A DNA stretch of 63,377 bases, counting the filler, from Bigelowiella natans CCMP2755 (taxonomy: Eukaryota > Protista > Cercozoa), in the NCBI GenBank assembly GCA_000320545.1. It is 8 parts of 8 records of this genome, joined end to end, with 100 filler letters (N's around TTAATTAATTAA, not from the genome) between each part and the next. Parts side by side here need not be neighbours in the genome. Positions count along the whole stretch, not along the records: positions 25,227 to 44,208 come from ADNK01000569.1; 7 more parts are not named here. One strand, written 5' to 3'. Numbering within the stretch: the first letter of the stretch is position 1; each line of letters opens with the position of its first letter. The notes beneath the pieces were generated by a model that did not search any database, was not told the origin of the DNA, and was given only the letters and a program-made list of their open reading frames with translations. Made by a program: the position numbers and the translations under genes. Below are positions 25,227 through 44,208 of this stretch, one piece after another.

Positions 25227-25267
25227 TTCGTCGTCGCTTTTCCCTATAGACAAAGAGCCCGGACAGG

Positions 25268-28200
25268 ATGCGCCTAGAAAAATTAGGGGGGATCATATCA
25301 TTCTACAATCACAAGATATACTTTGCTAAGTTGCCAAAGAAGTCAGGCAGGACCATCAGCCAGAACATGATACGGCTTGACGAGTGGACCTCTGAGTCAA
25401 GCGTTAATGCGTTAGAGTTTATGGACCTAGCGGACAACAAGCTACCTACACCTACCGAGCTACGGAAGAAGAACCCCGGCAAGACCATCCGACAGATAAC
25501 GGAGCTACTGGACAAGACCCCCCCAGCTGATGATTGGGATATCGACAAAGGCAAAAAGTACATTAATAAAATATTAAACGAGAAGTACTCTGACATCACC
25601 AAGCCGACGACGAAGCCCTCCAGCAAGCTTACCCCAGTAAAGATCGAGCTAAAGAAGGGATACGAAGAGTGCATCATCAATGACCCAGAACATAGGCGAC
25701 CGGAAGCGGACTGGGAAAAGATAGAGTGGCAGATCAATGAATGGGCAAAGGAAGGGAAGATAGAGCCAAGCAACTCACCATGGAACGTGAGACATGTGCT
25801 AGCTAAGAAACCTACTTACCCTTTCTTCCGCCTGGCGCACAACTTCATCCGCCACAACCGAGTAATAAAGAGGATCCAGACACCTACACCAAGGATAGAT
25901 GACGTTATTGAACACGTCATAGGATACAAATACTACTCTTCCCTAGATAAAAATGAATCATACATGCAGACACCCATCCACAAAACCTCCCGCCCCATTA
26001 CCGCGTTCTCCAGCAGGCACAGGAAGTGGCACTTCGTCGTATTCCCTTACGGCCTAAGCATATCAGGGGATGCGTTCAGTAGTCAGAACTACAGGGCATA
26101 CACACATGATGGGATGGCGTCTGTGTTGTGGGTGTTTGTGTTTGTGTATGTGGATGATGACATAATATGTACCAACACAGTCGTCGCTCAGATCTTCCTC
26201 CTGGAAAATATATTTATTAGGTTTGCACACTTCGGTTTTACTATTAGACTGCAGAAGTGTACATTCCTAGCTACAAGAATCAAGTGGTGTGGATATTACC
26301 TGGAGCAAGGCCGCATCACCCCAAACCCCGAGAAAGTAGCAGCACTACAGCAAGCCCCTAAACCTAAGAATGCAAAGGAGTTAAAGTCATTCTTGCAGAC
26401 TGCAGCTTGGATACTACGTAGGTTCTCCCCTACCTACGCTAGGACTGCAGCTGCTTTTACTACTGCTTACCGGAAGGAGAACTCTGTAGGCCTCAGCTTC
26501 GCTAAGGTGTGGGCCAAGGCTGGCCTTGATGCCCACTTCGATAACCTAATAAAGTTATGCAGCAACACCCTATTGAATGCTAAGCTAGACACTACTAGAC
26601 CAGCTACCCTATGGACAGACTGGTCTAAGCTAGGTATGGCTGCTGTACTTACCCAAGACCAGCAGATCATACGGGTGTGGGGCAGGGCCTGCACAGCAGC
26701 TGAGGCCAAGTACAGCCCTACAAAAGGAGAGTATAAAGCCATGACTGAGGCGCAGAGGAAACTAAGATACTACCTGCTGTCGGTGCCCAGCTTCACCTTA
26801 ATGACTGACCACAAGCCCCTCCTAGGCATCGACCGCAAGCTCGAAGCGCCTAACGATGAGTATGCAGCTATGAGGGCGGACACGGAAGAGTTTAGGGACA
26901 AGAGGACAGTGGTCTACGCACCAGGAGACAAGCAGCTTGCTGACTATTTCAGCAGGCTGTTCGAAAAGAAAGTCCCTACCCAGGTCACCCCTATGGTTAA
27001 CGCGATTACCTTCGAGGACGGCGACTTCCTGCCTGAGCCAGAGGAGCTCCAGCACCTTCAAGAACACCTGGATAAATACAAACACAAGCATGAGGTACTT
27101 AGTGATAGGATATATGTATACACTAATAATGTTAGGCGTACCTACGTGCCACGGCGGACCAGGGGAGCCCTTCTCTTTACCGCCCATGGACCTGCACACG
27201 TAGGAGAAAACCATATCACTGCTCTACTCTACCATTACTACTGGCCCTACAAGCTAAAAGAGATAAGGACATACCTGCGTGGCTGCAGGTGCTCCAGCTT
27301 GAAGGCGGCAGGCGTCGCCACCAAGGAGTCCAGCAAGAGCCGTGCATCTAAGAAAATCAAAGCAAGGAACTTCTTAGATATCGTGCAAATTGATGTTTAT
27401 AAGTACGATGGCTATCACTACCTTACCTTCGTTGATGTGGCCACTGGAAAGTGCTGGGTTAAAAAGATTATCAAGGTCAACGTTGCTAAGAAGAACAAAG
27501 GCTTATATAAGCAGAGGCTTACTAACTGCTACCGTACCTGGGAGTCTGAGCTCCAGGCTATCCCTGATGAAGTTAGCATAAACAAGATACCAAAGAAGTT
27601 ACATGTGGATAATGAGACCTCTCTTCTACAGCTACCACACCCTAATATTGATGCCTCACCTGTATACTATGCCCAGTCCAACTCCAAGGTAGAGCGACTC
27701 CACCGCACCTTGGCCAACCTAAGCAGGATAAATAGCACCACACCAGACAAGATACAAGGGTTAGTAAACGACACCTTCACGTCTGGGGGAGGTATCAAGG
27801 ATAAGGAGAGGGAAGAAGGCGACGACAACGACGACGATACCGAGAGCGAAGACGAGAAGGTCCCGTACGATGGCCGAGTTCTAAAGGAAGGACAGTATGT
27901 TAGGGCCAAGGTAAATCTGAGATCGAGAAATAAACAAGACCCCTTCTGGGGTGGCGTTGCAAAGGTTACCGAGAGGAAGGGGAGGAAGCAGTACTACATC
28001 TATGATGGGAACAGGGTCACCTTGCGCCACATCAGTCACCTAAAGAATTATGATATCGGTGAGAAGCTCCTAGAGGATGTTAAAGTAAACCCTACTGTGT
28101 GGGAGCGAGCAATGCCTTGTTTAGGACCCCGACCTAAGTTCGATGTGGAATATGGAAACAATAAGGTCAGGGTGAACGACGATTGGCGCATGAAGATTGT

Positions 28201-28456
28201 CTATCTAGGCTACCCTGGATTACGAAATATGGAGAGGGTAGCTATGAAAATAAAGGACGGAAAATATCAGCTACTCTACCTAGCTGTTCCCGACTTACCC
28301 TTTGAGCACTGGTATAAGGTCCTGGGGGACCTTGATGCAGAGGGCTGGTATGGACACGAACCTAAGGACGAAGGTGAGTTCTGGGTAAGCGACAAAGGAG
28401 ATAAGGTTAGAGAGGAATCTATTACCTGGTGGTTGGTGAAGTTCCGAAAGCGATGA
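25268..28456 (+). CDS. pol: Gypsy Pol: reverse transcriptase, RNase H, integrase (HHCC-like, DDE, SH3-like) plus a C-terminal Dam-like methyltransferase-like domain
   Basis: RT: SPWN, LD, PYGL, YVDD, LQKCTF. RNase H: TDWS..TKGEY..TDHKPL. INT: HGPAHVG..YYWP..CRC, QID, VDVAT, VDNE, SNSKVERLHRTL. Confidence 0.9.
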   Translation: MRLEKLGGIISFYNHKIYFAKLPKKSGRTISQNMIRLDEWTSESSVNALEFMDLADNKLPTPTELRKKNPGKTIRQITELLDKTPPADDWDIDKGKKYINKILNEKYSDITKPTTKPSSKLTPVKIELKKGYEECIINDPEHRRPEADWEKIEWQINEWAKEGKIEPSNSPWNVRHVLAKKPTYPFFRLAHNFIRHNRVIKRIQTPTPRIDDVIEHVIGYKYYSSLDKNESYMQTPIHKTSRPITAFSSRHRKWHFVVFPYGLSISGDAFSSQNYRAYTHDGMASVLWVFVFVYVDDDIICTNTVVAQIFLLENIFIRFAHFGFTIRLQKCTFLATRIKWCGYYLEQGRITPNPEKVAALQQAPKPKNAKELKSFLQTAAWILRRFSPTYARTAAAFTTAYRKENSVGLSFAKVWAKAGLDAHFDNLIKLCSNTLLNAKLDTTRPATLWTDWSKLGMAAVLTQDQQIIRVWGRACTAAEAKYSPTKGEYKAMTEAQRKLRYYLLSVPSFTLMTDHKPLLGIDRKLEAPNDEYAAMRADTEEFRDKRTVVYAPGDKQLADYFSRLFEKKVPTQVTPMVNAITFEDGDFLPEPEELQHLQEHLDKYKHKHEVLSDRIYVYTNNVRRTYVPRRTRGALLFTAHGPAHVGENHITALLYHYYWPYKLKEIRTYLRGCRCSSLKAAGVATKESSKSRASKKIKARNFLDIVQIDVYKYDGYHYLTFVDVATGKCWVKKIIKVNVAKKNKGLYKQRLTNCYRTWESELQAIPDEVSINKIPKKLHVDNETSLLQLPHPNIDASPVYYAQSNSKVERLHRTLANLSRINSTTPDKIQGLVNDTFTSGGGIKDKEREEGDDNDDDTESEDEKVPYDGRVLKEGQYVRAKVNLRSRNKQDPFWGGVAKVTERKGRKQYYIYDGNRVTLRHISHLKNYDIGEKLLEDVKVNPTVWERAMPCLGPRPKFDVEYGNNKVRVNDDWRMKIVYLGYPGLRNMERVAMKIKDGKYQLLYLAVPDLPFEHWYKVLGDLDAEGWYGHEPKDEGEFWVSDKGDKVREESITWWLVKFRKR

Positions 28457-28507
28457 AGGTCTAAGGGAATAAGGAAGGAAGGAAGGAGCAACGTGACTTG
28501 GGGGAGG

Positions 28508-28819
28508 TGTAGCGCGTACCACTACGCGGGCACAAGTCACGTGCGACAACAAAGGGGTTGTCGCGGATATAGAATATAGATAACGTAGATATTAATACAG
28601 CATAGGCACGTGGGTTCCGGCGGGACTCATGGCAGCACACCGGAAGTGTGCTGCCCCACGTGCGGCGGCATTCGCGAAAGCTTCGCGAATGATTACGCAG
28701 TGCACGATTTAATAAAAATATAATCTTTAATAAAAATAAACACAACTCTTCAAAAGGAAGCAAACGTGCCTTTCCCCCCCCCTGCCTACTTGTGCACGTA
28801 GCGCCTCGGCCTGTGAACA
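28508..28819 (+). repeat. Putative 3' LTR (~310 bp; right boundary inferred)
   Basis: Starts TGT immediately after the PPT-like GGGGGAGG and plausibly ends ACA at 28819. Contains an AT-rich TATA-like stretch (~28566-28600) and AATAAA signals (~28711-28740). There is no second copy in the window to confirm it. Confidence 0.5.
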
Positions 28820-29430
28820 CCTTACGCGCAACATGCAGGGAAACATGGCTGGCAAGGCCAAAAGGTGTGCTTTTCGCGTCCGTGGACTTTGACTTGGTCG
28901 CCTGCAACATCGCCCGGTGGTGCGAGCAATGAGTTCGCGCAGTTCAACTGGAGCACGACAAAAAGTGGAAGCAGTGAGCGTCGCGCTGGTGCGCCGCCAC
29001 GCAAGCCGTCAATGCCCACACACTTCTTTCAAAACGCATTGTTGGGTTGTGATTGTTTGCCCACACAAAAAGTCGTCAAAACCAGTCACGTGCTAGCGTG
29101 GCGACTTTGTTCTCCGTGGCCAGGTTCAAGGCTCAAAAACTGGCATGTTTTTGCAGGGTGACGAGGATGTTCCGCACGCAAGGGATTCTTCAACTGCGGC
29201 AAGCACATCTGGAAGTCGCAGGATGATGATGTGCCGACTGCTGCTGCTTCTGCAAAAACACCAACTCCGGTGCAACATGTACTTGTCGAAGTTGCGCCTC
29301 AGAATTCCGCCTGCGACTTGCATTTCTTGACAAAAACAATTTGAACACAGGCGGTTCCCTCACCTTCTTCATCTGACTGCCATTGAAGCGAAAGAACCAT
29401 CAACACCAAACTTTCCTCCCCCCGTGCACC

Positions 29431-32400
29431 ATGACCAAGCTTGCATTTGCCGCATTGGCAATTTTTGTGGCAGGGTAATCTAGCATGTAGAATCAAGAAC
29501 AGACGCTAGAACAGTGCGAATGCACAACGCTGAACGAGATGTTGCGACCCTCGAATTTGCCCTTCTTGTCTAAATCATTCGGTCATAACAATGTGTCAGA
29601 TTTGTTGCGGGCCATCAAGAAAGGCAATGATCCACAGTCAATTAATGGAACAGAAAGTATGAAACTTCAACATGCTCTTTTATTGCAGGCTTCATCATGA
29701 GGAAAGTCACCGTGAATACATCACAGAAGAAGAGGTGATGATGTACCTCCGATAGGCCGTTTGAAAATTGTTCCTGATTCAAAACCACAATCAAAACTTC
29801 TATTCGCAGTCTAAAAACGTCAAGCAAATATATGAGGAATTCGGACTCAAATATAATGGACTCACGGTACGACGATGAGGCCACAAAGAAGGGTTGAGGT
29901 TATTGCACTAATTCCAAAACAATTAGGGAACTTCCAACTGCGTTTCTGGCAAACAGTGCGCTGCCCTTGTTGTGTACATGAGGTAAGAGTCGTGAGTGAT
30001 AGGTTATGTGTGCTAAACCTTTGCATTTTCTAGAACGAACGATCAGGACAAAACACAAATATTTAGAGAGGACAGCAAGGAGTACCTCCAGCGATCAACA
30101 TGCGGTATGCACATTGGCAGAATGATGCCAAAAAACTAAAGACTACCTCAATTTGTGTTCACAGGCACCCTGGCAAACGCGATGTACCATACTCATCAAT
30201 TTCCCCAGGAGTTCGGTACAGTCTTCCTCGCCCAGTTATGAATAACCCATCCAAATTAACAACCAAAACTGATGTTAGGTAGCAAATGGCGCTACGGAAT
30301 CGATGTCGTGTTTATGCATGACGAAAATATTCCAGTACCTCAACCTTTTAATATCAAAAATGGGCGTATTCAGAAATTATAATTTTCGAAGGAGCGGCAC
30401 CTGAATGTGATCCGGAGCTTTGGGGCTCGAACCCTCGCACTCTCTGACGACATCAAAAGGATGAGCTGCCGTGGTAGTACAAGTCTTTTATTCCTCTGAT
30501 TTTCTTTACTTTTCTAAGATGCATTTATTGCTTATTGTAGGCTATCTCAAGTCAAATTTTGAGAAGGCGCAAAAACTGGGATTGACACAAGAAAGGTGAG
30601 TCGTGAAGCTTGGGCTAGCTGTTTTTTGTTAACCAAAGCTCTTTGGGTATCAGTTGCAAGAAACCTTTCTCTGAAAAGTTTTTCCCTGGAGAGTTTCTCT
30701 CGATGATCGAGTCTCATTTGAAGGTATGCGGTTCGTAGCCGTGCTCGATTCTAGATGAACAATATGAAACTCTTGACTTCGGTAACTTTTGCCCCTATGC
30801 GTGCATCATCTCTTAAGCTTGCAGCTGTCGGACTGGCAGACTACGATGCCGTAGTGCACATAGAACCGACAACCTTCGTCCGAAGCACAAAGAGTGAGTA
30901 AATTCCTTTGGTCCCCAAATGCTCCGTATCCAAGCGGATTAGTTCTTCATTTCTTCCCACATGATCCGTATCGCTCTCAGAATTATTGTGGAAGTTGGAT
31001 GTTCTTTTCGGGCACCCTGCTATAGAGTTTATAGGAGAAACAGCAGATGGAAGGCCACACAGTCACTCCTCGTGGTCATTTGGCGCCCTCACCTGCTTTG
31101 AAGTCTCAATGTTTATACTAAATATCTCCCCTCTGTGTTGTTGTGTATAGGATAGCACGTCCATCCTTGCAAGCAGTCCAAATATGGCTGGAAGATCTCG
31201 AGGTAGTAGTAATATCGGTAGAAGTAAAAACGGCCATCCATATCAGTGGCGCGTCTACGTTCTTCACACATTGAGATGGAACATATGACAATAAAAAAAA
31301 GGCTGGGTTCAACCCACACCACGGCTGGAGCAACGCTACGTCGGACACAAGCCTTCTTTCCCACAATGACGGCTGGGGATTCCAAGGTTGCCCCACTTAT
31401 AAGCCAGCACATTCTCCCGTTTCAGATATCCAACTTCGAGCAATTTTCAGGGTCTGATGGTGTGCGAGGACTCTTATATCATGTTTTCACCTTAAAGCTT
31501 GGGGCGGGGAAGCACCCAGCTGGTATTCTATAAACCTATCGTAAAGGTTGTGTTGCCTGAAGCTAACAATGTTATAATTAAACCCCTCCAGCAGCAAAAC
31601 GCATCCATACCGACTCCAAGGTTTGTCAAGATTTCTCTCATGGAAAGCCTTCCAATCCTCTTGCATGAGACTGAAACATCCTATCCGATAATAGGATATA
31701 ATAACGGAGGCGAATGGAATTGAGGTTAAGATAGATAAGGAGGAAAATCCTGGAACTTCTCTGCTCCTAAAACTGATGTTGGATGCCTATTTCAGGCCTA
31801 TGGTATTCGGCCGTGGGATTTGAACCCCTGTGGAGATAAACTGTACCTTCACATCATGATGATGATGATGATCATCATCGTCATCATCGACATCACCATC
31901 ACCACCAATTCACTGTTACAACGTCTTTCCTTTGGTTGATATGGCATGATTCGTGTAGTCTGCTAGCGAACATCATTCGATTCCCTGAGTTGCAACCGTT
32001 TTAGCCGCGCAAAGGATATGGGCTACGACGACCGAATGAAAGTCCGCAGACTGACTTCACTTCTTGCGGAACTACTCGTGATGTCAGATCTCAAAAGAGA
32101 ATCTTTGGATGATGAGGTATGTGGATGAAACTGGCTTATACCAAATGCAAAGCATAGATAGGCCATCAAATTGTGCTCCGATTACACATACGTTGTGATA
32201 TATGTATGTATGTATATATATATATATATATATATATGGACAGAGCGATTTCTTAGTAAGTTACTGCCTTCCAATAATCAAGAGGAACGAAGATCACTGC
32301 ATTCAGGTGACAACTGAATTATTTGGAATTGCACTAATGTGTGTAATATCATAAAATACTATCCTCCTATTTTGCCTAGGTCAATCAGCAAATTGACCTT

Positions 32401-32451
32401 GCACGAAAAGCGCACATTGGTGCTTGGGCTAATAAAAATGGGGAAAAGTAA
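29431..32451 (+). CDS. GT8-like (nucleotide-diphospho-sugar transferase fold) protein with an N-terminal hydrophobic anchor; many short introns
   Basis: Spliced MTKLAFAALAIFVAG..., KQCAALVVYM, GTLANAMYHTHQFPQEFG|SKWRYGIDVVF, HLK|LAAVGLADYDAVVHIEPTTFV, GTYDNKKKAGFNPHHGWS, DGVRGLLYHVF, RPWDLNPC, ending ...AWANKNGEK* at 32451. Family assigned from remembered motifs. Confidence 0.55.
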
Positions 32452-32459
32452 GGATTCGT

Positions 32460-33290
32460 AATTAAAATTCGAACAACTAGATGACGATAATAAAAGATAC
32501 AAAAGCAAACTTTCATTATCATGCATACGTATGTAAAGAAGTCTCTCTCCCGTGCATCGGTAACGACAACTGTTAACTTGTTTTAGCGGATTAACTAATG
32601 CTCATTTAGAACTTAAGATCATTCGAATCATGAATCCATGCACCGCACCATGCGCGTATTGGTTTAGTGTCTGCTGCATGTCTAGCTAGCTAGGTGTGAT
32701 GCACCTGCATGCAACGCTAGAACATGCACTGCGGCGCACACACTCTAGATGGAAGAACGAGGCACATAGACATGTGTAGTAGGTCGCAACGAGTTGTCAT
32801 TAGAGGCCTACTGTCAGCTACGATGTTTCAAATCTGCATCTGATGTGATTCTGTAATGATGTGATGATCCTTGTACGTACATACAAGCCTGTTACACATC
32901 TAGACATGTAGACATCGCATGCATGTACTGAGCATGAAAGGTAGCGCAATGTCTGGATCTAGAGATGTAGCATTGCTTGTAGTTGTGTGATTCTGAACTC
33001 TTCGATTCAGATGTATCCGTACCTAATGGAAAATATCAGAGTCATCTAGTCATTGCGGCGCTCTTACTTCGATCGTTATCAACCGCCACGTCACATTGTT
33101 CCTACGATCTTAAAATTTTGAAATCATTTCCATGCCCACAGTTCGTTTTCAGGTGATGATGCATTGTGTTTGTCTCACATTTTGAGAAAATTGTAGGCAT
33201 TGCTAGGGGCGAAGGTGATACGCCTGATAAAATATATTCTTCGATCAACAAATAACGACAACGATTTGTAATGCACATGCAAACCATGGT
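32460..33290. other. CTAG/TGCA/CATG-rich spacer between convergent genes
   Basis: (CTAG)3 at 32682-32693; many CATG/TGCA/CTAG words. Confidence 0.55.
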
Positions 33291-33393
33291 ATCAGATAGA
33301 ATCTTTAAAATGTCTTATTAAGAACATACTCACGAAGAGATGCATATTATTTCTTATCCGTTGAATTGATGTACACACACACAAACGTGATGA

Positions 33394-33446
<53 letters not shown>

Positions 33447-33450
33447 CCTC

Positions 33451-34380
33451 TTATTTTGGAATGGTTTCTATCATCTAAAGAAGTCGTCGTCGTCGTTGTT
33501 GTTGTTGTTGTTTATTTCATCATCAAACCAATGTTTCCGTCTCCACGTCTACTATGTAGCCTCTGCACAGCCAGAAAAAATTAGAGCGTCAGTAGCGGCG
33601 GCGAACAAACAACAACTTGCCACTCTAAGTTGTTTGAGTATTATCATGAAGACGATATGTTTCGAGACGTTTTGCCGGCCTTCGGTTCCGAGAAGGCGAA
33701 GGAAACATTATTTTCAGGAGAAACCGCACTCTCTCCTCATCGCTCACTCGCACGCTCACTTACCCTTGCGCCGAATGAGAGCTCACACCCGTACACTCTC
33801 CCCAATAGAGACAACTGACCACCTTTGGTGGGTGGGAAGAAGAAGAAGAACCCAAGGCAAAAGAAGAAGACGTAGAAAAGGGGGAAGGGGGGGGAAAGGG
33901 GGGGGGGGGGAGATCTGCTGTCATATGGAAGAAGACGAGAAGTGAGACGAAGGGCGCAAGAACTACTCGATACCTTCGGTCCTTTTGGCGTGTCTATCGT
34001 CACAATATCGACGCTGTGCACTCCAAGCTTTGGCAGCGGTCGGACCTGGGAACGGAGCGAGAGTAAGATTTCACCATTGTTGTAAGCTGCTTTAGTGGCA
34101 GCAAGAATCGTGGTTGTAGAGGTGGTAGTAGTAGTAGATGTTTCTCGTAGCTATTTCTCATAGGAAAACAGGAAAAGAGCACGCCGGCCGCCTGGGCGGC
34201 TGTTCCTTATTCTATCGTCCCACTCCTCTTCGCGCCATTGGTATTAATGCTTCGCGCCTCTTGTTTCAACTGCTGCTGCTGCTGCGTATGGCCACCACCA
34301 TCACCACCACTACTACCATATGTGCAACAACCTACCCATTCTAAGAACAACGTCGTCTTTCCTTGCCACTTTGCCTCTTC

Positions 34381-34415
<35 letters not shown>

Positions 34416-34617
34416 TGTACCCCAGAAGCAGCAGCAAGTGAGGGAAATGGGTCGTATCCCTAACCTTCCTTGTGCCCCAATCTCCCCCACTCCCCCCCCC
34501 TTCTATCTTTCTAGTCTATAGTACAATCGCGAGTTTTTCAAGGGACTCTTTCGATTCGAAGTCTTTGCCTGGTGGAAGAGGAAAGGTAGGGGCATGAGAG
34601 CTGTTTGAAATGAAGTA

Positions 34618-34697
<80 letters not shown>

Positions 34698-34844
34698 GCA
34701 CAAACACACACAAGCACAAACACAAACACGCACCATATTCGAGAAATCGATCTCCAATTCCAAGGTAGCTATCCACAATCTGATTCAGCATTAACATGTA
34801 AATATAAGGTAGCTATCCACAATCAGATTTAGCACTAACACGTT

Positions 34845-34897
<53 letters not shown>

Positions 34898-35485
34898 CCG
34901 TGTGTATAATAGTGTATAATATTATATATGTGTATATATTATACATACTATCTTCGTCACTATGAGATCCACATGCTGCTCCCCTCGGGTGCATCTACGA
35001 CAACTACTACTCCTCCTCTTCCTACTCCTCCTCCTCCTGCCGCTGTTGCTGCTACTTTTACCTTTGCAACGATATCCTTGCCCGTGATACTTTGCGGTCC
35101 CGTGAGAGCGAGCTTGTTGGATTCCCACCGCCCAAATTCGTACGGTACTCGAATCTTACTTGTTCCCATCACTCCTCTCCAGAAATCTTTGTCTAATGAT
35201 GCGTAGGAGGGAGGATGAATATGGGGATGGTGAGAGTGCAGCGCAGGGGGCATGCATGTTTGGGGCTCTGTGGTAGGAAGCGCAAAAACCTTGCAAATTC
35301 CTCCGAAAAACATAGGAAACAACGATGGATCATCATCTTGGCAAATATTACCGGTAAGCCGGTCATAGAGCGAGTGCTCCACGGCTAGATCAATTTCAGA
35401 CTAACGATTGTTAAGGATGTTAAGGAGGTGCCGTTCACTATCTAGGAAGCGAGTCCACGACCAACTAACCCCCCTTCCCCATCCG

Positions 35486-35518
<33 letters not shown>

Positions 35519-36201
35519 TTCTCCTTCTCCACATCCTACTCACGCCAAACGCCTGTGATTCTACGTCGTAAGATACCTTCGAACACATGAGGAAAACTCC
35601 AACCATCTGGGATAGGTCAAGGTATGAGTCCCATAACAGAGTCGATAGGCGGCCTGAATAGTAATTCAGCATATCACAGCTTAGCTCAAAGGCGTTGCTC
35701 TCGCTGTGCTGCTTATCATGTGCTACTACCTTCGGGACTAAGGAAGAAGACACGGCCTGGGCCTGCCATCATCCAGTCAGCTTCAACCTTAAACTGAATA
35801 AGAAATTTAAAATGATAAATGAAAATCGTATCGTACTTCGTACAGTCAGTGACACAACGCGCAGGAAGATCGAATCGTTTCCGCACTAGTTTCACTACCA
35901 AGTAAGGCTTTATTCTTTTCCAAGCCGACCACACCATGACAGTAGCTGGGAAAGCGAGGTAGGTGGATGAGGCGACCAAGGCTGTCAAAGGTCCATGCCA
36001 GGTCCGATTCCATGCCCACACATGCTTGAAGAACGAGAATGGATGCGTAAGAGCGAAGTAGTAGTAGAGGCATGCAGTCGTGGCAAAACGCCCCCCAGTA
36101 TCTGCTAATCCAAACCAGCTCCTCTCTGGAAGTGACGTGCTAACATCGTACAGCTTTCCTGCCGTCAGCACACCGGATTGGTCCTCTTTCGAGTCGGCCA
36201 T
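33451..36201 (-). CDS. Hypothetical protein with N-terminal hydrophobic segments and a possible ATP-grasp-like C-terminal region
   Basis: Long first exon from ATG 36201 (MADSKEDQ...GRVFFLSPEG). Later exons: DKDFWRGVMG..GKDIVAK, IVDSYLGIGDRFLEY|GKDF, QVRPLPKLGVHSVDIVTIDTPKGPK|VVSCLYW(G)ECTGVSSHSAQG|GYIVDVETETL. One 1-nt homopolymer correction needed; 3' end uncertain. Confidence 0.6.
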
Positions 36202-36860
36202 CGTTCCAGACCGATTCCAGGCCCGACGGTAGACAAAAAGCTACAACGACACATGCGATAAAAATGCAGACTGTTTTTGTCCTGTTGACTCCATAATGCC
36301 TTGTCGCACGTGAAAGTTATTTGCCGGACGGCCCGGATTTCCCGGAAATATCCGATTACGTTTCCTTACCGCATCCAAGAGGTTTTAGGTGGAAAGGGCA
36401 TGCATTTCACCAGAGATTGGCGTAGTCCATCTCACTTCCTTTGAGTTTTAGCTGGAAATTGTGATCTATGCCCTGCGACATCGATTTTTTCCGCGAAAGG
36501 CCATTTTTGGTGTGGGCGAAAAATTAACAAAGAAACACAGCATCTTTTGTCCATGCGAGCACTATTCATGGTTGGATTTTTTTAAGGTCGTCATAGAAAC
36601 GAAGGGGCGCCTATATGGTAGTAGCAAGGAGAGAAATGTACTTGATTCACTTACTGCGACAATAATATATGACATATTTAGCCGAAATTAGGCGGTATCT
36701 GTCCTTCCAACGGGACAATTCTTATTCGGCCAGAAAGAGGAAGTCCTCCCCTCCCCCAGCTGATCCGAGTGTTCCTCTTCGACCGGAACCGAGGACTCAC
36801 TCCGTGGCGCCCACACCGGGCTACTAATTTACATCCTCTGTCTCTTTCGAAAGCTTCACC
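36202..36860. promoter_or_regulatory. Bidirectional promoter region (660 bp between divergent ATGs)
   Basis: ATG at 36201 (-) and ATG at 36861 (+). CpG-rich and microsatellite-free. Confidence 0.5.
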
Positions 36861-38398
36861 ATGGACGTTGAGGTGGACGTGCCAAATGACTTCATTTGCC
36901 CGATTTCGCGGTGCTTGATGAGCCACCCTACCATCAACGACGCGGGGAGCACGTACGAATACTTATCCATCGCCGAGTGGTTCGCTCTTGGCAACCGGAT
37001 AGATCCTATCTCTGGTATCAAGATTCATAATCCGACTCTTCTCATTCCGAACCGGTCGTTGAAGTCACAAATAGAGGAATGGAAGCAAAAGCACGCGGAA
37101 CACCCGGAAGTGACTACGACCAGGCGAATGCAGAAGGCAGATTACCGATCGGCAATCAAGTTGTTTCAGAAACAAAATAATATTAAACCAAAACACCAGA
37201 AAGGAAAAGACAATGGCAGAGGTCTAGGCGTAGGTAAGCCATCATCGAAGAGCGGTTCGTCATCGGTATCATCACGGACGGAAAGGAAGGGGGGGGTGAT
37301 TACCACCGCTGATTGTAGTTATAACTCTATGGTCAGTAAGAAGGACATTGTTGAGTTTACCATCATCACTTTGGGAGATACTGGCGTTGGAAAATCGTGC
37401 CTTTTGCACCGCTATGCGAAGAATTCCTTCAATACTCTGATGCCCTTCACATGCGGTCCGGAGCTTTACTTTAAGAGACTCAGGGTCAAGGGAAGAGAAG
37501 TGAAGCTTACGATCGTAATAACCCGCCCTTATGACAACCAAAATGCATTACCTTTTTTCTCTATTGTTTCTTCATCTCTATCTTCATCTTATCCCCCTCC
37601 CCCCCCTTCCCCCCCTCTCTCATACTCCTACCTATGCTTTCAGTGGGACACCGCTGGGCAAGAACAGTTCAGGTTGGAGCCCATCGTGCTTACCAGAATC
37701 ATTATTATTGACGATCTATGTGTCCTTTACCTCCTACATCAAATTCAGTATTTCAACTGCTTGTCCCTCGTAATCATTGGAATCCATGGGGTGATAATCG
37801 TTCGCACATCATTCAGGTCGATCACACGGTCTTACTACACAAAGGCTGATGGAGTTGTCCTCGTGTATGACATCACGAGGCGTAATACTTTCTCGAACCT
37901 TCTAGAGACTAAGTCAGGATGGTTAAGGTGAGACTCAGGATTCGGAAAGGGGGGGGGGGGGGGGGGCAATTGGAGAAAGATGGTGAATAGTACTTCATTT
38001 GCCGTTCTACGATGAACTCTTTCTGCTAATTTCTGTTATAACACCTTAATCTCTTGCTCCTCTATCAAAATGTACATCACCATCCTCCCCAATGATGCTG
38101 ACGAAGTATATTTATTCTTGATTACTATCTCTCCTCCGCCGCCCCTTTGCCGCCCCTCCTCCCCTCCCACACGTACTACAGCGAGCTTGAGGACCACTGC
38201 GGGAACAAGGTAGAGAAAGTCGTAGTCGGCGCAAGGGCCGATCTGAGTGAATTCAAGGACGTATCAATTGACGATGTTCACCGTGTGGCTGAGAAATACT
38301 CTCTCGATGTCTTCGAGACGAGTGCCAAAACAGGGCTGGGCGTTGATAAGGTACAGAGCATGAGGGAAGGCGTAGAAAGCTAAGATAATACCGTAATC

Positions 38399-38454
<56 letters not shown>

Positions 38455-38758
38455 GTAAAAAAGACAAGTATTTTCTATGCATGATTTCGGCGCTTCCGTG
38501 CGTGCGTGTGTGCGTAGCGACCACATTTCCCACATGCATGCTGTAGATGATCGTGTTTTGCCCTCATTGTTGGCTTCCTTCAAGGCCATGGAGAGGCTGG
38601 TTGAGAAGTTGCTTGAGAGACAGATGAAACAAGAGAAGAGCGAACTGGGTTCACGAAAGAATAACGCACATCGAAAGCTAAAGCTCCTCGGACCAACATC
38701 TCGTATGAACAAGGGGCGGAAGTCAAGCAATAATAACGCAGATATGTGTTGCGTTTAG
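36861..38758 (+). CDS. U-box domain fused to a Rab-family small GTPase, with C-terminal CC prenylation motif
   Basis: U-box: VPNDFICPIS..LMSHP..GSTYEYLSIAEWF..DPISG..LIPNRSLKSQIEEW. Rab: GDTGVGKS, |WDTAGQEQFR|SITRSYY..ADGVVLVYDIT, VVVGARADL, FETSAKTG. Ends ...ADMCCV* at 38758. Confidence 0.9.
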
Positions 38759-38779
38759 AGAACAATATGGCCCCCGCAC

Positions 38780-39660
38780 TCACTGGGATGCCAATGTATA
38801 AATCGATGCGACGATGGAGTGAATGAATTATTGTTAGTTTTGCATGTCAGTAATCGAATATGGCTTGGAGCGTGCTTATTTTTGGACGTGCATCTTCGTA
38901 TCATTTACTTTTATATAGACATAACAGTCTTACACCTGCACAGGCATGCTTGCATAGCTTGTGAGACGGATGCAATGAAACAAATACAAACAAATACGTA
39001 TTTTTCAATTATCAATGGTCATCATCCTTTTATCGTATGTACAGGCGTACTCTACGCATGCAGTATGCTGTGCATGCATCACACCAAGTTGCTCATTTTG
39101 ATATTTATCAGCGTAGTTCAACATGTAAAAATGACAATGCTATTGCTTAGAATACACACAACACGTTTGGAACTGATCAAACGAGATGAGGTCTAAAGGT
39201 GCTGCTGCACGTCCTACGCAAGCGAATGCACATGACATGCGCGCGTGTGTGCACTGTCTAGACTACGAGTGTTTGTTGCCATTGTGTAAGTGCCGTGGCT
39301 AGCTACATGCTAGCATGCACACAAAAACGTGTTCAGAGATGCATCATGTTAGCATGTCAATGTCATCATTGAGCCAGCACATGCATGACACATCGATCTA
39401 GGAAATGTCACTAAACATCTTTGCATGTCAAGTCAGAAACTGCTATTCACTAGAATGCACTAAGAAACGGTCCACACACATCTTGGCATTCATTTTCAGC
39501 ACACGCACTAGCGCAGGCTAAGAGGACGCGCAGCGCAGTGCTCCAACATGTCTTGACTGTCATCTGTTCAGGCATTCTCACGCGCTGTCCGATTCATTTA
39601 GAAAACTAACATGCCGCAAACTCGATCTATGTACAAGGTACATCTTTCATCACAAAACAG
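38780..39660. other. CATG/TGCA/CTAG-rich spacer between convergent genes
   Basis: Same composition as the other 3' spacers; lies between stops at 38758 (+) and 39743 (-). Confidence 0.55.
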
Positions 39661-39742
39661 TTTCTACATTCTTTGAACAGCTATACTGCCACGTGGACAG
39701 AAATTGTACATACAATCCTGGAATCGGCTACTTCCTGGGGGG

Positions 39743-40433
39743 TCAATCCACAATCAACGACCCATATATTTCGAATCCTGAAAGAGCTAGGAACCAGTGG
39801 CCTGCATACAGCATCAAACACACAAATAAGCATGGTATGGAGGACGTCAATGTGTCTCAGCAAACGAATTACCATTAGAATTTTGGCCTGTCTGGAAAAT
39901 GCGAAAGATTCGGAAGAATTCTGAGGAAGAAATCAATAAACAGAGAGAGCAATTTGTCGTACAAACCATAGCAAATAGTAGCTATCATGAAAAAACAACT
40001 CGTGGATGACTTCATGCTGCAAGGTATATTCTTACGAGGTGCTACTTATTACACGAACATTCAGCTGGCGTTGTTATCTATCTTACTGCGCGACGAGTAA
40101 AAAGGGAAAACGTTCCGAAGACAAAAGGCTGTTGCTTGTCTTAAGATTAGATGCGTCCAATTTCGTCGTGATTGCATCAATATCTCAACATCATCATCAT
40201 CATCATCATCATATCATTGTTTGGAGTAGCCAATGCACGACCTGGTGTATTTAGCCTCCAGGTGAACGTCGAGCCCTTCCCGTCGAGCCCTCTGGAAATA
40301 TATCAGAGATGCAGCATTACATTGACGACACCGAGAAGCTTACTTAGCAACAATTTTCCATTATTAGACAAGGTGTTCTTAGACCCGTCGTCTTTGTGCT
40401 CACGAATCGTGGTCCTGCGACAGAGACAGACAG

Positions 40434-40483
<50 letters not shown>

Positions 40484-41424
40484 AACATGAGAAATGGCCG
40501 TCTGTGAAAAAATCAATTTGACTTTATTGACATCTCCCCTTGTCCTCGTCCTCTCCCCCCCCCATTCTTCTCTTTTACTACTACCAAGTCCTGTCGTTGT
40601 TAGAGCCTTCTAGCCTCCAATTTCTTACAGCCTTTTTTTAAATTTCAATGTGTGATGAAGAAGCGAATTTATTAATCATCCATGCACAATGTTATGTTCA
40701 AACACAGAAGAATCAAAAATATGTTCGCAGTTAGCACGACGAAGGCCCTTTTTGCGCACAAGAATTGCTTTAAACTCCTCGTTGCAAAGCAGAGAAAAGC
40801 CATAGAAAACCTCTTCTTTGCCCTACACTCTACTGCGGAGAATGACGACACTTTCTTCTCTAATTTTTTTCCATTCTTTATTTTGCCCCGGGGGGGGGAG
40901 AGGGGGGGGTGGGTTTAGCGAGCGGAATGACTCCTTTACGCTTATGATATGAAATATATTCTTCGATTCCAGCACAAAGGTGTTAAGGGTAGTAGTAGTA
41001 TTGCGAGGGTGATATCATCGATCGTCAAAGAAGGGCAAGAAAGACCTCAGAGTCCCACGATGAATAGTGCCTGAGTCAAGGGGCAAAGAAGGGTTGCAAA
41101 TGAGGTACGTTATCATGTGCGAGAACGAATCTTCGGACCATTCGGGGGACGAAAATCAACCGAAAACATCGATTGGCTTTTGCGGCTAATCTCGTTTCGG
41201 GAGACGTCAAATTATATCGGCGCTTCCATTGATTTTTTTTGAGAAAAATACGTTTTGGGTACTACTACTACTACTCCAACTTCCTACTCTTACGGTGTGT
41301 GTGGTGCGGTGTACATCTGCACGTTGTACGTACTCTATTGATCTATCTGTTACATGTGTGTACGCGCACAGAAATGACGATTGCATAGAAATAAATCAAA
41401 ACTTGAAGCTAGCGACTACGAACT

Positions 41425-41516
<92 letters not shown>

Positions 41517-41970
41517 CATTCCACCTCAGCGAGTATGCTGTCGGCCTGATCTTCACCGTTCTGAAATCGATCTAAAGCACATACGAGAAATAGGTCAAAA
41601 GCGACGACGACTACGTGACCGACACATCCATTGCACCCACGCACACGCAAACGCACACAAACGCTCTTCTATTGCTGCTGAAGCTTTTAACATGTTGTCG
41701 TTTGTGTTGTTGCAACCTTGAAATAACTCCGCTTTGCTTGCTTAGTCACGCATCGTACTGTGGACCTACCAAGGATCCCTTCAAGGTGGGAGGGAGAAGA
41801 GCGAGGAGGAGAGGGGAGGAGGAGGAGGAGGAGGCGGCGGCGAGAGAGAAAGAGGGGTTAGGAAGGGGCATCAGATACTCCTTACTCACATCCGAAATGT
41901 TAATACATCCTTGTGCTTGTGCGCCCTTCTCTTTCATCTTACAGGGCCAACCCGCATCCCCTTCTATCAT

Positions 41971-42002
<32 letters not shown>

Positions 42003-42340
42003 GCCCAGAGAGGGGGGGGGAAGCGCGCGTTCATACGCAACGGCGGCCTGGTGCTGCCGCTATTATGCAACCCACCCCATGCAGGGACAGAAGCTGGTCG
42101 CTTTGCGAGAGGGCTCGAGGTGACAACGATAGCTCCTGAAAGCAAGGAGCACAGGCGTCATGACAAAAGGAGGGGTATAAGGAAGGGGGGGGGGGGGGCA
42201 CTAAGTAGTATCAAGGGAAGGGCATGAAGATGCCAAGATACACAGACGGAAAGAGAGAATTGAAGAACGACAACACTTTGCTTACACCCGCTTCAATCGG
42301 AATTGGATGTGCCTTCCTTAGACTCGTTTATTCAATCAGT

Positions 42341-42377
<37 letters not shown>

Positions 42378-42543
42378 AATTTTTATCATAATTTTTTAAA
42401 CCGGATTCGCCGGGGTTCTTCCACGTCCTCGAGCGCATCCCAGTACCGATGGCGTATACTATGCCTTGCTCATCAAAATCCACGCCTGATCGATCATCGA
42501 GTTGGATGGTGATGATGGTGATGATGGTGGTGATGGTGATGAT

Positions 42544-42576
<33 letters not shown>

Positions 42577-42793
42577 TAGACCATATAGTAATAATTCAAC
42601 GCAAAATGATTAAATATTATATATGGTATAAATTGTGTAAATGTGAGCAAAAAACGCCTCTGTGTAGTATATTCATTCTGATATATTATGGATGTCGTGA
42701 GGAGCAAAGTAGGAAAGAAACTGAAGTGTGTCTTCGTTGCGGATGATGATCTGCCTCCGAGGAAGAAGCAGAAGGAGGAGATGGAACAGCAGC

Positions 42794-42824
<31 letters not shown>

Positions 42825-43657
42825 GGGACAACGACGATAGTTCCCACCACCAAACCGCCGTTGTTCTTCTTTACCTGAATACTTGAACTCGAGCTGAGAG
42901 GAGGAGGCGGCGCCACTGCTACTCTCCGTCAATTCATTGACGTTCTGTTGATGATGACGAAAGGTCATTAATAATGCATGGAAAGCAGGAGAAGAGGAGG
43001 AGGAGGAGGAGGAGGAGGAATAAGAAGAAGAGGCAGAAGAGGGGGGACAGGAAGGAATGCGAGCAGCAATCTCTTCAATCACGATATAATTTCAATCAAT
43101 CGAGAATAAATATGCGGAGAGACAAAGGGCGGCTCTTGCTTCGCTGCCTAAGACCTGCTGCTCTGTTTCAGGACTCCTATTCCCCGAAGGAGCTGCTGCC
43201 ATCATTTCTGCTGCAGCTTTTGAGAGCTTTACTTGTCCATATAACTGAGTAGGGGGGGGGGGGGGAGCAAGAATAAGAGGAGAAAGAACACGGACAACGA
43301 GGCATGATCGAGCTCCGCCTCACGACTGACCTCAATTCCGCTACAGGCTAAGAAGTAGTGCATGTTCGAGTTCATACCGACTTGCACCTATCGCCAAGCA
43401 ACAATAACAACAACAACAACAACGAAATATACAGATGCTTGCCACCTTTGCGTCGTGCGACAAGAAGACTGTAAGGGGAGAAAGGAAGAAAGAAAGAAAG
43501 AAAGGAGATCGGGAAATGGGAATGGGGGGGGGGTGGGGAGATACCACTCTAAAGCTGTCAAAGAATTCCTTGGTTTCCTGGGGAGAAATACCGACGAGCA
43601 TGTGTTATCAGTACAACGCGCCGTTAGCCCCAAAAAGCAATCTTTGAGGTGCATGTG

Positions 43658-43697
<40 letters not shown>

Positions 43698-44060
43698 AGT
43701 GACAATCGATCGCAACGATGATCTCGCAAATGTACGACAACGCAGCAGCGGTATAAAGAGTGAGAGGGGTGGCTGGCGGGGAGGCATTCATTATTACAAG
43801 TGGCCAGATTGCTTCGGAGCCTTTTGCATTTAACGCCTCATCATTCGTGTGCTCCGACAACACCATCCATTCCTCTCCTTTGCCCGAGGGGGAGGAGGAC
43901 CCTTTTTTCCCTTCTAGTCGCCAGTTCCTTAATGCCTAGTGAACGATTATTCGTGCACGGCAATCATGACGATAGCACAGCGAAACGACGCAGCAGCAGC
44001 AGCAGCAATAGCACCTCTTTGTCCCAGCTAACGTAGTGCCTCAATGCGTACGATGTTGGC
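39743..44060 (-). CDS. Protein with two tandem HECTD1/BTB-associated beta-sandwich (F5/8-type-C/SUN-like) domains; 5' part lost in the gap
   Basis: Repeat 1: PTSYALRHYVSWDKE|ALRNWRLEG..WMVLSEHTNDEALNAKGSEAIWPL..QVGMNSNMHYFLACSGIE|LYG. Repeat 2: EFKYS|GVDFDEQGIVYAIGT..WKNPGES..ILGRSTVRCVTK..|IDFRTVKIRPTAYSLR|HYSSWDSE|AVRNWRLEGSN..W|TTIREHKDD..GSTFTW..|TGQNSNG|HWFLALSGFEIYGSLIVD*. Confidence 0.75.
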
Positions 44061-44169
44061 CTGATAATCATCATTCCGGCAAATACAGCAGGGGCAGTAG
44101 CGTATTACCGACTCGATCGCAATACTCCTCCCCCCCCCCCCCCCACCCCAAGCCACTTATACTAACTAT

Positions 44170-44208
<39 letters not shown>

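Follow-up and report, generated by a model that had tools for sequence, protein, structure and literature searches.

A U-box joined to a divergent Rab GTPase in a single expressed gene of the chlorarachniophyte alga Bigelowiella natans

The window, by which we mean the whole stretch of DNA analysed (63,377 nucleotides, filler included), contains a five-exon gene of Bigelowiella natans CCMP2755 at 36861-38758 on the plus strand, within the part that comes from record ADNK01000569.1 (window 25,227-44,208; assembly GCA_000320545.1). Its product of 378 amino acids begins with a U-box and continues into a Rab-like GTPase (residues 161-335). The features of the gene are as follows.

36744..36860, plus strand: 5′ UTR, minimum extent; the run X2 contig begins at 36744 and continues into exon 1
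36861..37514, plus strand: exon 1, 218 codons without a stop, encoding the U-box, the conserved helix, the linker and Rab G1 plus switch I
36879..37097, plus strand: U-box domain (Pfam PF04564), residues 7-79, with the CPI loop (Ile15), the helix 1 Trp40 and the LIPN loop (Pro63) kept
37122..37175, plus strand: conserved helix 3′ of the U-box (QKADY..AI..F), residues ~88-105, as placed by alignment and model
37176..37340, plus strand: basic, Ser- and Gly-rich linker, residues ~106-160, weakly conserved and of low pLDDT
37374..37397, plus strand: G1/P-loop GDTGVGKS, residues 172-179, a sequence motif
37644..37672, plus strand: exon 2, with G3 (WDTAGQEQF) and its catalytic Gln; the 37514/37644 junction is found in three runs
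37817..37927, plus strand: exon 3, the end of switch II, the RabF3-F5 region (RSIT, YYTKA, LVYDIT) and a family-specific insert of 4 residues
38182..38350, plus strand: exon 4, with G4 and G5 (ETSAK), Pfam Ras positions 96-150, bounded by RNA junctions
38231..38242, plus strand: G4 motif ARAD in place of NKxD, residues 282-285, aligned with GNKCD of Rab10
38585..38758, plus strand: exon 5, the C-terminal helix, the basic hypervariable tail, CCV (38747-38755) and the TAG stop
38759..38936, plus strand: 3′ UTR, with the poly(A) site near 38936; one contig (X8) reaches 39154
37515-37643, 37673-37816, 37928-38181 and 38351-38584, plus strand: introns 1-4, all short and GT-AG, from sequence and RNA junctions

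The region 36744-36860 contains no ATG ahead of the start codon at 36861, and an in-frame TAA lies 12 codons 5′ of it. An earlier note on this DNA had described a complete U-box, a basic and serine-rich linker and the Rab G1/switch I region in one uninterrupted exon, with a product ending in CCV. We find this description sound: the U-box covers 72 of the 73 positions of its Pfam profile, the linker is rich in Lys, Arg, Ser and Gly, the U-box and Ras matches both fall within the stop-free exon 1, and CCV followed by TAG occupies 38747-38758. The end of the exon, which the note had put at 37526, needs correction; the GT donor is at 37515, where contigs from three runs are spliced, so the exon ends at 37514 and the note had overshot by 12 nt beyond the donor. 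Neither intron 1 (129 nt) nor intron 2 (144 nt) shifts the frame or contains a stop, and the unspliced sequence therefore shows a naive open reading frame of 356 codons.

The surroundings of the gene have some features of their own. An intact LTR-retrotransposon-type pol reading frame of 1062 residues lies at 25268-28456 on the plus strand and matches the reverse transcriptase, RNase H and integrase zinc-binding domains, and 5′ of the U-box/Rab gene the opposite strand carries a 161-residue reading frame (35716-36201, minus strand) that has no Pfam match. Dinucleotide microsatellites (TC, TA, AC, AG, TG) are numerous, for example at 33397-33446, 34654-34939 and 38397-38439, the last within intron 4, and introns 1 and 3 contain runs of G and C. 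A tRNA scan of the part that carries the gene found none.

Public RNA runs mapped on 36300-39300 contain all four GT-AG junctions in RNA-derived contigs from three studies. One contig of 1370 nt runs unbroken from the 5′ UTR (36744) to the 3′ UTR (38874) with no breaks other than the introns. An MMETSP transcript of B. natans (P0001, annotated as a complete open reading frame of 378 residues) is identical to the five-exon model, and a second (P0005, also 378 residues) differs at one position. The raw reads of run X24 place loose poly-A ends at 38936; this run, the only one used as raw reads, is 3′-biased and uninformative on the 5′ end. The RNA runs show neither a junction nor a cluster of starts within exon 1, a pattern with which a minor internal start would still be compatible.

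The JGI catalogue model for this gene, Bigna1 52717 (P0006, 222 residues), begins at the internal Met157 (window 37329) and holds the Rab part only. Such a model would suit a reading in which two adjacent genes, or a chimeric assembly, have been mistaken for one, but we give this reading virtually no credence. Both domains are encoded in one stop-free genomic exon, independent RNA contigs from three studies and the two MMETSP transcripts cover both domains, and the architecture recurs in the four remaining chlorarachniophyte sources, where a single open reading frame likewise encodes the U-box and G1. There is thus a single mRNA across exon 1 rather than separate ones, in keeping with the view of the earlier note that the fusion is not a product of gene modelling, and the artefact is effectively refuted. 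We conclude that the U-box/Rab gene is a genuine, expressed and lineage-restricted fusion, one gene with one mRNA. The truncated reference model is corrected accordingly; since it lacks the U-box, domain databases built on it would not show the fusion, and its truncation hides the architecture from them. The internal Met157 and the JGI model may leave room for a Rab-only isoform.

Some of the RNA data depart from the five-exon transcript. A further transcript (P0007, 331 residues) retains intron 4 (38351-38584) and so ends soon after G5, with neither the tail nor CCV; contigs in runs X1 and X2 cover intron 4 in part, at a depth below that of the spliced form. The retention could mean that the pre-mRNA had yet to be spliced or that an isoform without prenylation is made. 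A contig of 133 nt in run X8 crosses the intron 1 donor (37485-37615) at a depth of ~250, as against ~340-370 for the spliced form, and runs X1 and X2 have almost no coverage of intron 1; the X8 depth may be inflated by C-rich low-complexity sequence. The same run yields a 3013-nt contig of which only 75 nt just 5′ of the gene (36668-36742) match, the remainder being absent from the window. It could be an exon from another transcript or a chimeric contig.

The U-box matches Pfam PF04564 at residues 7-79 (E 8.2e-13, profile 1-72 of 73) with 48.7 bits, above the curated cut-off of 21.4 bits, and the U-boxes of the orthologues likewise match above threshold. It aligns end to end with the U-boxes of plant PUB12/13-type ligases, PUB14, LubX and CHIP. 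U-boxes in general are RING-like folds held together by salt bridges and hydrogen bonds and lack the eight zinc-binding Cys/His ligands. The B. natans domain has only Cys13, Cys18, His22 and His56 within residues 7-79, too few for two zinc sites. An Ile in the CPI loop, a Trp in helix 1 and a Pro in the LIPN loop are the established E2-contact positions of CHIP and PUB ligases. In alignment with PUB12/13 these positions are occupied by Ile15, Trp40 and Pro63, which the family conserves, W40 and P63 invariantly so, and it is a reasonable inference from these residues, together with the di-cysteine tail, that the protein would be a membrane-anchored ubiquitin ligase. The AlphaFold model gives the U-box a pLDDT of only 40-70, low because only the family sequences covered this domain in the alignment used by the model. 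The helix that follows is modelled over residues 92-105 with a pLDDT of about 80-87, and the five-row family alignment shows no variation at Q91, K92, D94, I99 and F102.

The same architecture is present in five chlorarachniophyte sources. Besides B. natans, U-box-then-Rab orthologues occur in B. longifila (P0002, 376 residues), Lotharella oceanica (P0004 and P0009) and a further MMETSP species (P0003 and P0008), while the fifth source (L002, with P0163) has the U-box, linker and G1 in one open reading frame. In this last sequence a T-rich insert ending in AG (L002:760-945) splits the Rab domain within switch I/strand 2; from its sequence it looks like a retained intron, placed unlike any intron of B. 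natans. Identity to the distant orthologues is 75-83% for the U-box and 59-62% for the Rab domain, far above the 9-23% of the linker and tail, which indicates that both domains are constrained, the U-box most of all.

We searched widely for the same design elsewhere. The earlier note had presented the combination as unusual, and the architecture is indeed not a common one: the family profile was run exhaustively with HMMER against 1.84 billion representative proteins, the matches were screened with a family U-box HMM and the 84 longer ones passed through Pfam, and no U-box-then-Rab protein emerged outside the chlorarachniophytes. Pfam assigned the other matches with several aligned stretches to GTPase and P-loop families alone, and on this tally they are probably tandem Rabs. 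A word-based protein search with the family profile gave no further fusions, and the family U-box peptides had no relatives in the 185,579 prokaryotic genomes scanned. Within the databases searched, the U-box-then-Rab design is therefore seen only in chlorarachniophyte algae.

Sequence and model comparisons identify the divergent G domain as a member of the Rab family. Exon 1 by itself gives a Pfam Ras match at residues 168-218 (E 8.9e-10, above the curated cut-off), and the full protein P0001 scores 158.9 bits for Ras as against 62.8 bits for Arf. The best sequence matches in the PDB are all Rabs (Rab10, Rab8, Rab14, Rab2 and Rab43, E about 1e-37), and the G domain scores alike against Rab10, 8, 14, 2, 43, 18, 11 and 1. 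The domain is modelled with a pLDDT above 90, and Foldseek superimposes it on Rab43, Rab8 and Rab1 with TM scores of 0.93-0.94 and an rmsd of 1.4 Å. A quick maximum-likelihood tree of narrow sampling places all family members together (SH-aLRT 99) on a long branch of 3.16 changes per column, apart from the Rab1/8 and Rab14 groups that were sampled.

RabF1-F5 are reportedly Rab-specific motifs, as set out by Pereira-Leal and Seabra. B. natans retains RabF2 (KLTIW), RabF3 (FRSIT) and RabF5 (LVYDIT), while RabF1 has changed from IGVDF to CGPEL and RabF4 from YYRGA to YYTKA. Across the family the switch I/RabF1 segment reads TCGPEL or TLGADA, as compared with TIGVDF as the commonest form among 43 comparison Rabs, and RabF4 reads YY[TKR]KA as compared with YYRGx in most of them; the family also has an insert of four residues ahead of WL in helix 3 that sets it apart from the 43. 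So strong a divergence of switch I/RabF1 means that recognition by REP/RabGGTase, GEFs, GAPs and effectors is not to be assumed.

Most of the nucleotide-binding apparatus is intact. Across the family, conservation extends to G1 (GDTGVGKS), the Thr of switch I, the DTAGQ of G3 including its catalytic Gln, the Asp of G4 and the whole of G5 (ETSAK). The canonical G1-G5 set is nevertheless incomplete, as G4 is ARAD instead of [NT]KxD in every member: GARAD occurs in all four full-length family rows and in P0163, as compared with GNKxD in 43 of 43 comparison Rabs. The G4 Asp is the residue that reads guanine, and GBP- and atlastin-type GTPases function with an RD-type G4; by analogy with the GBP type, guanine binding by the Rab domain has probably not been lost. 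Mutation of the G4 Asn of Rab1a (N124I) abolishes nucleotide binding (PMC2120032), and HRAS K117R weakens nucleotide contacts (PMC10856033). Taken with ARAD, these precedents suggest a lower nucleotide affinity and a fast intrinsic exchange.

This pattern bears on whether the Rab module still works as a switch. It might no longer be cycled by GEFs and GAPs and do no more than hold the U-box ligase constitutively, as its prenylated anchor or scaffold, as the replacement of both the G4 Asn and Lys in every member, the divergence of switch I/RabF1 and RabF4 and the long branch would suggest. We regard this as somewhat unlikely, because the family-wide conservation of G1, the switch I Thr, DTAGQ with its Gln, the G4 Asp and G5 speaks for a domain that still binds and hydrolyses GTP, and because an RD-type G4 is found in GTPases that work. 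We prefer to see the Rab part as a targeting module that would be GEF-independent or mostly GTP-loaded, rather than a tightly regulated switch, with ARAD expected to weaken nucleotide binding and speed intrinsic exchange.

The C-terminus carries the di-cysteine geranylgeranylation motif of Rabs in four of the five members, which end in CCV (B. natans and B. longifila), CC (P0008) or CCS (P0163). From this sequence we infer that the terminal di-cysteine is geranylgeranylated. One transcriptome peptide of Lotharella oceanica (P0009) has a C-terminus without any cysteine, which could be a true loss of the anchor or reflect an incomplete transcript.

Rab GTPases give membranes their identity and ubiquitin tags cargo that is to be sorted, and the two systems usually meet through separate proteins. 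The reading of the U-box/Rab protein that we favour, and hold to be reasonably probable, is that of a membrane-targeted E3 ligase in which a U-box, a flexible linker, a divergent Rab and CCV form a single cytosolic chain encoded by a nuclear gene. The U-box begins at residue 7, which leaves no N-terminal targeting sequence and points to a cytosolic location. The two C-terminal cysteines would be geranylgeranylated, the Rab module would bring the protein to a particular endomembrane, and there the U-box would recruit a charged E2 and ubiquitinate nearby proteins. Candidate targets are cargo, effectors or partners bound to the Rab, or the U-box/Rab protein itself.

The linker between the two domains has a pLDDT below 50 across residues 114-153, varies from about 50 to about 100 residues in the family and shares only 16-18% identity with the distant orthologues; from the model, residues ~106-160 are probably disordered. 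A long, variable and unconserved linker favours tethering over rigid coupling. It thus weighs against the earlier note's proposal of a nucleotide-gated ligase, in which the GTP/GDP state of the Rab would switch the activity of the U-box or its capture of substrates, as does the G4 ARAD of every member, with which ordinary switch behaviour is not assured. Such gating could operate if the U-box or its helix docked on the switch regions, or if substrates were recruited as GTP-specific effectors, and it would fit the conservation of the fusion and of the helix between the domains, as well as the precedents of Rab40 and TRIM23, which couple both activities (PMC8129794, PMC12075517). On balance we consider it unlikely. 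A predicted complex of the Rab domain plus GTP with the U-box plus helix scored 0.00, a value that counts neither for nor against docking.

The linker and tail are also lysine-rich, as would be expected if the U-box acted in cis, ubiquitinating its own Rab domain or tail and so controlling activity, extraction or turnover. TRIM23 auto-ubiquitinates its own ARF domain. The architecture of the U-box/Rab protein is analogous to that of TRIM23 (PMC12075517), yet substrates in trans remain compatible with all of these observations, and we judge an action in cis to be distinctly improbable as the main function. A membrane-targeted ligase with a tethered U-box remains our preferred account. An elaboration that we hold to be very doubtful is that of a prenyl-anchored single-chain E3 whose own Rab nucleotide state sets its activity or substrate capture in cis, and whose ubiquitin would mark a chlorarachniophyte-specific trafficking step. 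The complex plastid of chlorarachniophytes is thought to be supplied by vesicles; that the trafficking step marked by the U-box/Rab ligase lies on the route to the plastid is pure speculation.

The gene is of interest because an E2-recruiting domain is wired straight to a Rab with a lipid-anchor motif, an arrangement kept through the divergence of the chlorarachniophyte genera. The family is a compact natural system in which to study the positioning or control of a ligase by a GTPase, and its ARAD a natural NKxD variant for studies of nucleotide handling. Practical impact is limited, since the family belongs to one small algal lineage and the concept has precedents.

The earlier note knew of no characterised protein of this kind. 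For the U-box and Rab pairing this stands: we found no described eukaryotic U-box-Rab protein in the literature searched, in which subscription papers were covered in part. It does not hold for the broader idea, since TRIM23, Rab40 and RhoBTB are characterised combinations of a GTPase with a ligase. The HMMER search did bring up one unrelated singleton, encoded by a single 2182-nt Logan contig (run ERR10755945), a 623-residue protein (P0213) that, like the chlorarachniophyte family, has a Rab (of canonical type) and a U-box in one chain. The order is reversed, with the Rab at residues 20-180 and the U-box at the C-terminal end (residues 540-611, E 1.8e-18), the intervening region is rich in Asn and Lys, G4 is an ordinary TKSD and the C-terminus has no cysteines. 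A word-based protein search gave no further fusions related to P0213, and in prokaryotic genomes only one low-coverage contig of 393 nt matched, to its Rab part. P0213 would be either a fusion that arose independently or the product of a chimeric contig. Clusters with Ras and RING-type fingers in one protein are listed in the ESM Atlas, among them one of 56 members (389-residue proteins) with no recorded taxa and one of 63 nematode members (291 residues), and fusions of RING domains with small GTPases may be commoner than published work implies.

Genome analysis of Legionella has described Rab-like proteins with U-box, F-box or ankyrin domains (bioRxiv 10.1101/350777). These effectors resemble the B. 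natans protein in pairing the Rab and U-box families in one chain (bioRxiv 10.1101/350777), but they are bacterial, secreted and known from prediction only. Plant PUB-type ligases and CHIP share a U-box that aligns end to end with that of B. natans (PUB12/13, PUB14, CHIP), but carry ARM or TPR substrate-binding domains where the B. natans protein has its GTPase. RhoBTB, which joins Rho and BTB domains, is a Cullin3 adaptor (PMC10413933); it too links a small-GTPase domain, in its case an atypical one, to a ligase-recruiting module (PMC10413933, PMC3946479), but through the Rho family and the BTB/Cul3 route, with neither a U-box nor a prenyl anchor.

Rab40, a Rab with a C-terminal SOCS box, assembles a Cullin5 ligase (PMC8129794, PMC10509765), so that here also a ubiquitin ligase includes a Rab-family GTPase, which steers localised ubiquitination (PMC8129794, PMC10509765). 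It acts as a substrate adaptor and depends on Elongin B/C, Cul5 and Rbx2, whereas the B. natans protein carries its own N-terminal E2-binding domain; a Pfam scan of P0001 found no SOCS box, which places it outside the Rab40 subfamily. Animal TRIM23/ARD1 is credited with the activities of both an E3 ligase and a GTPase (PMC12075517) and, like the B. natans protein, combines an N-terminal E2-recruiting domain of the RING class with a C-terminal GTPase of the Ras superfamily in one polypeptide. It differs in its zinc RING, B-boxes and coiled coil, in having an ARF rather than a Rab and in the lack of a C-terminal prenylation motif, and the two show no sequence kinship beyond their superfamilies. 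Of the TRIM23 layout (RING, B-box, coiled coil, ARF) the B. natans protein has only a U-box as its ligase domain and a GTPase that scores higher as Ras/Rab than as Arf. None of TRIM23, Rab40, RhoBTB and the Legionella effectors is homologous in architecture to the chlorarachniophyte family. We suggest that, in function, the U-box/Rab protein would be a one-chain counterpart of Rab40-CRL5 or of TRIM23.
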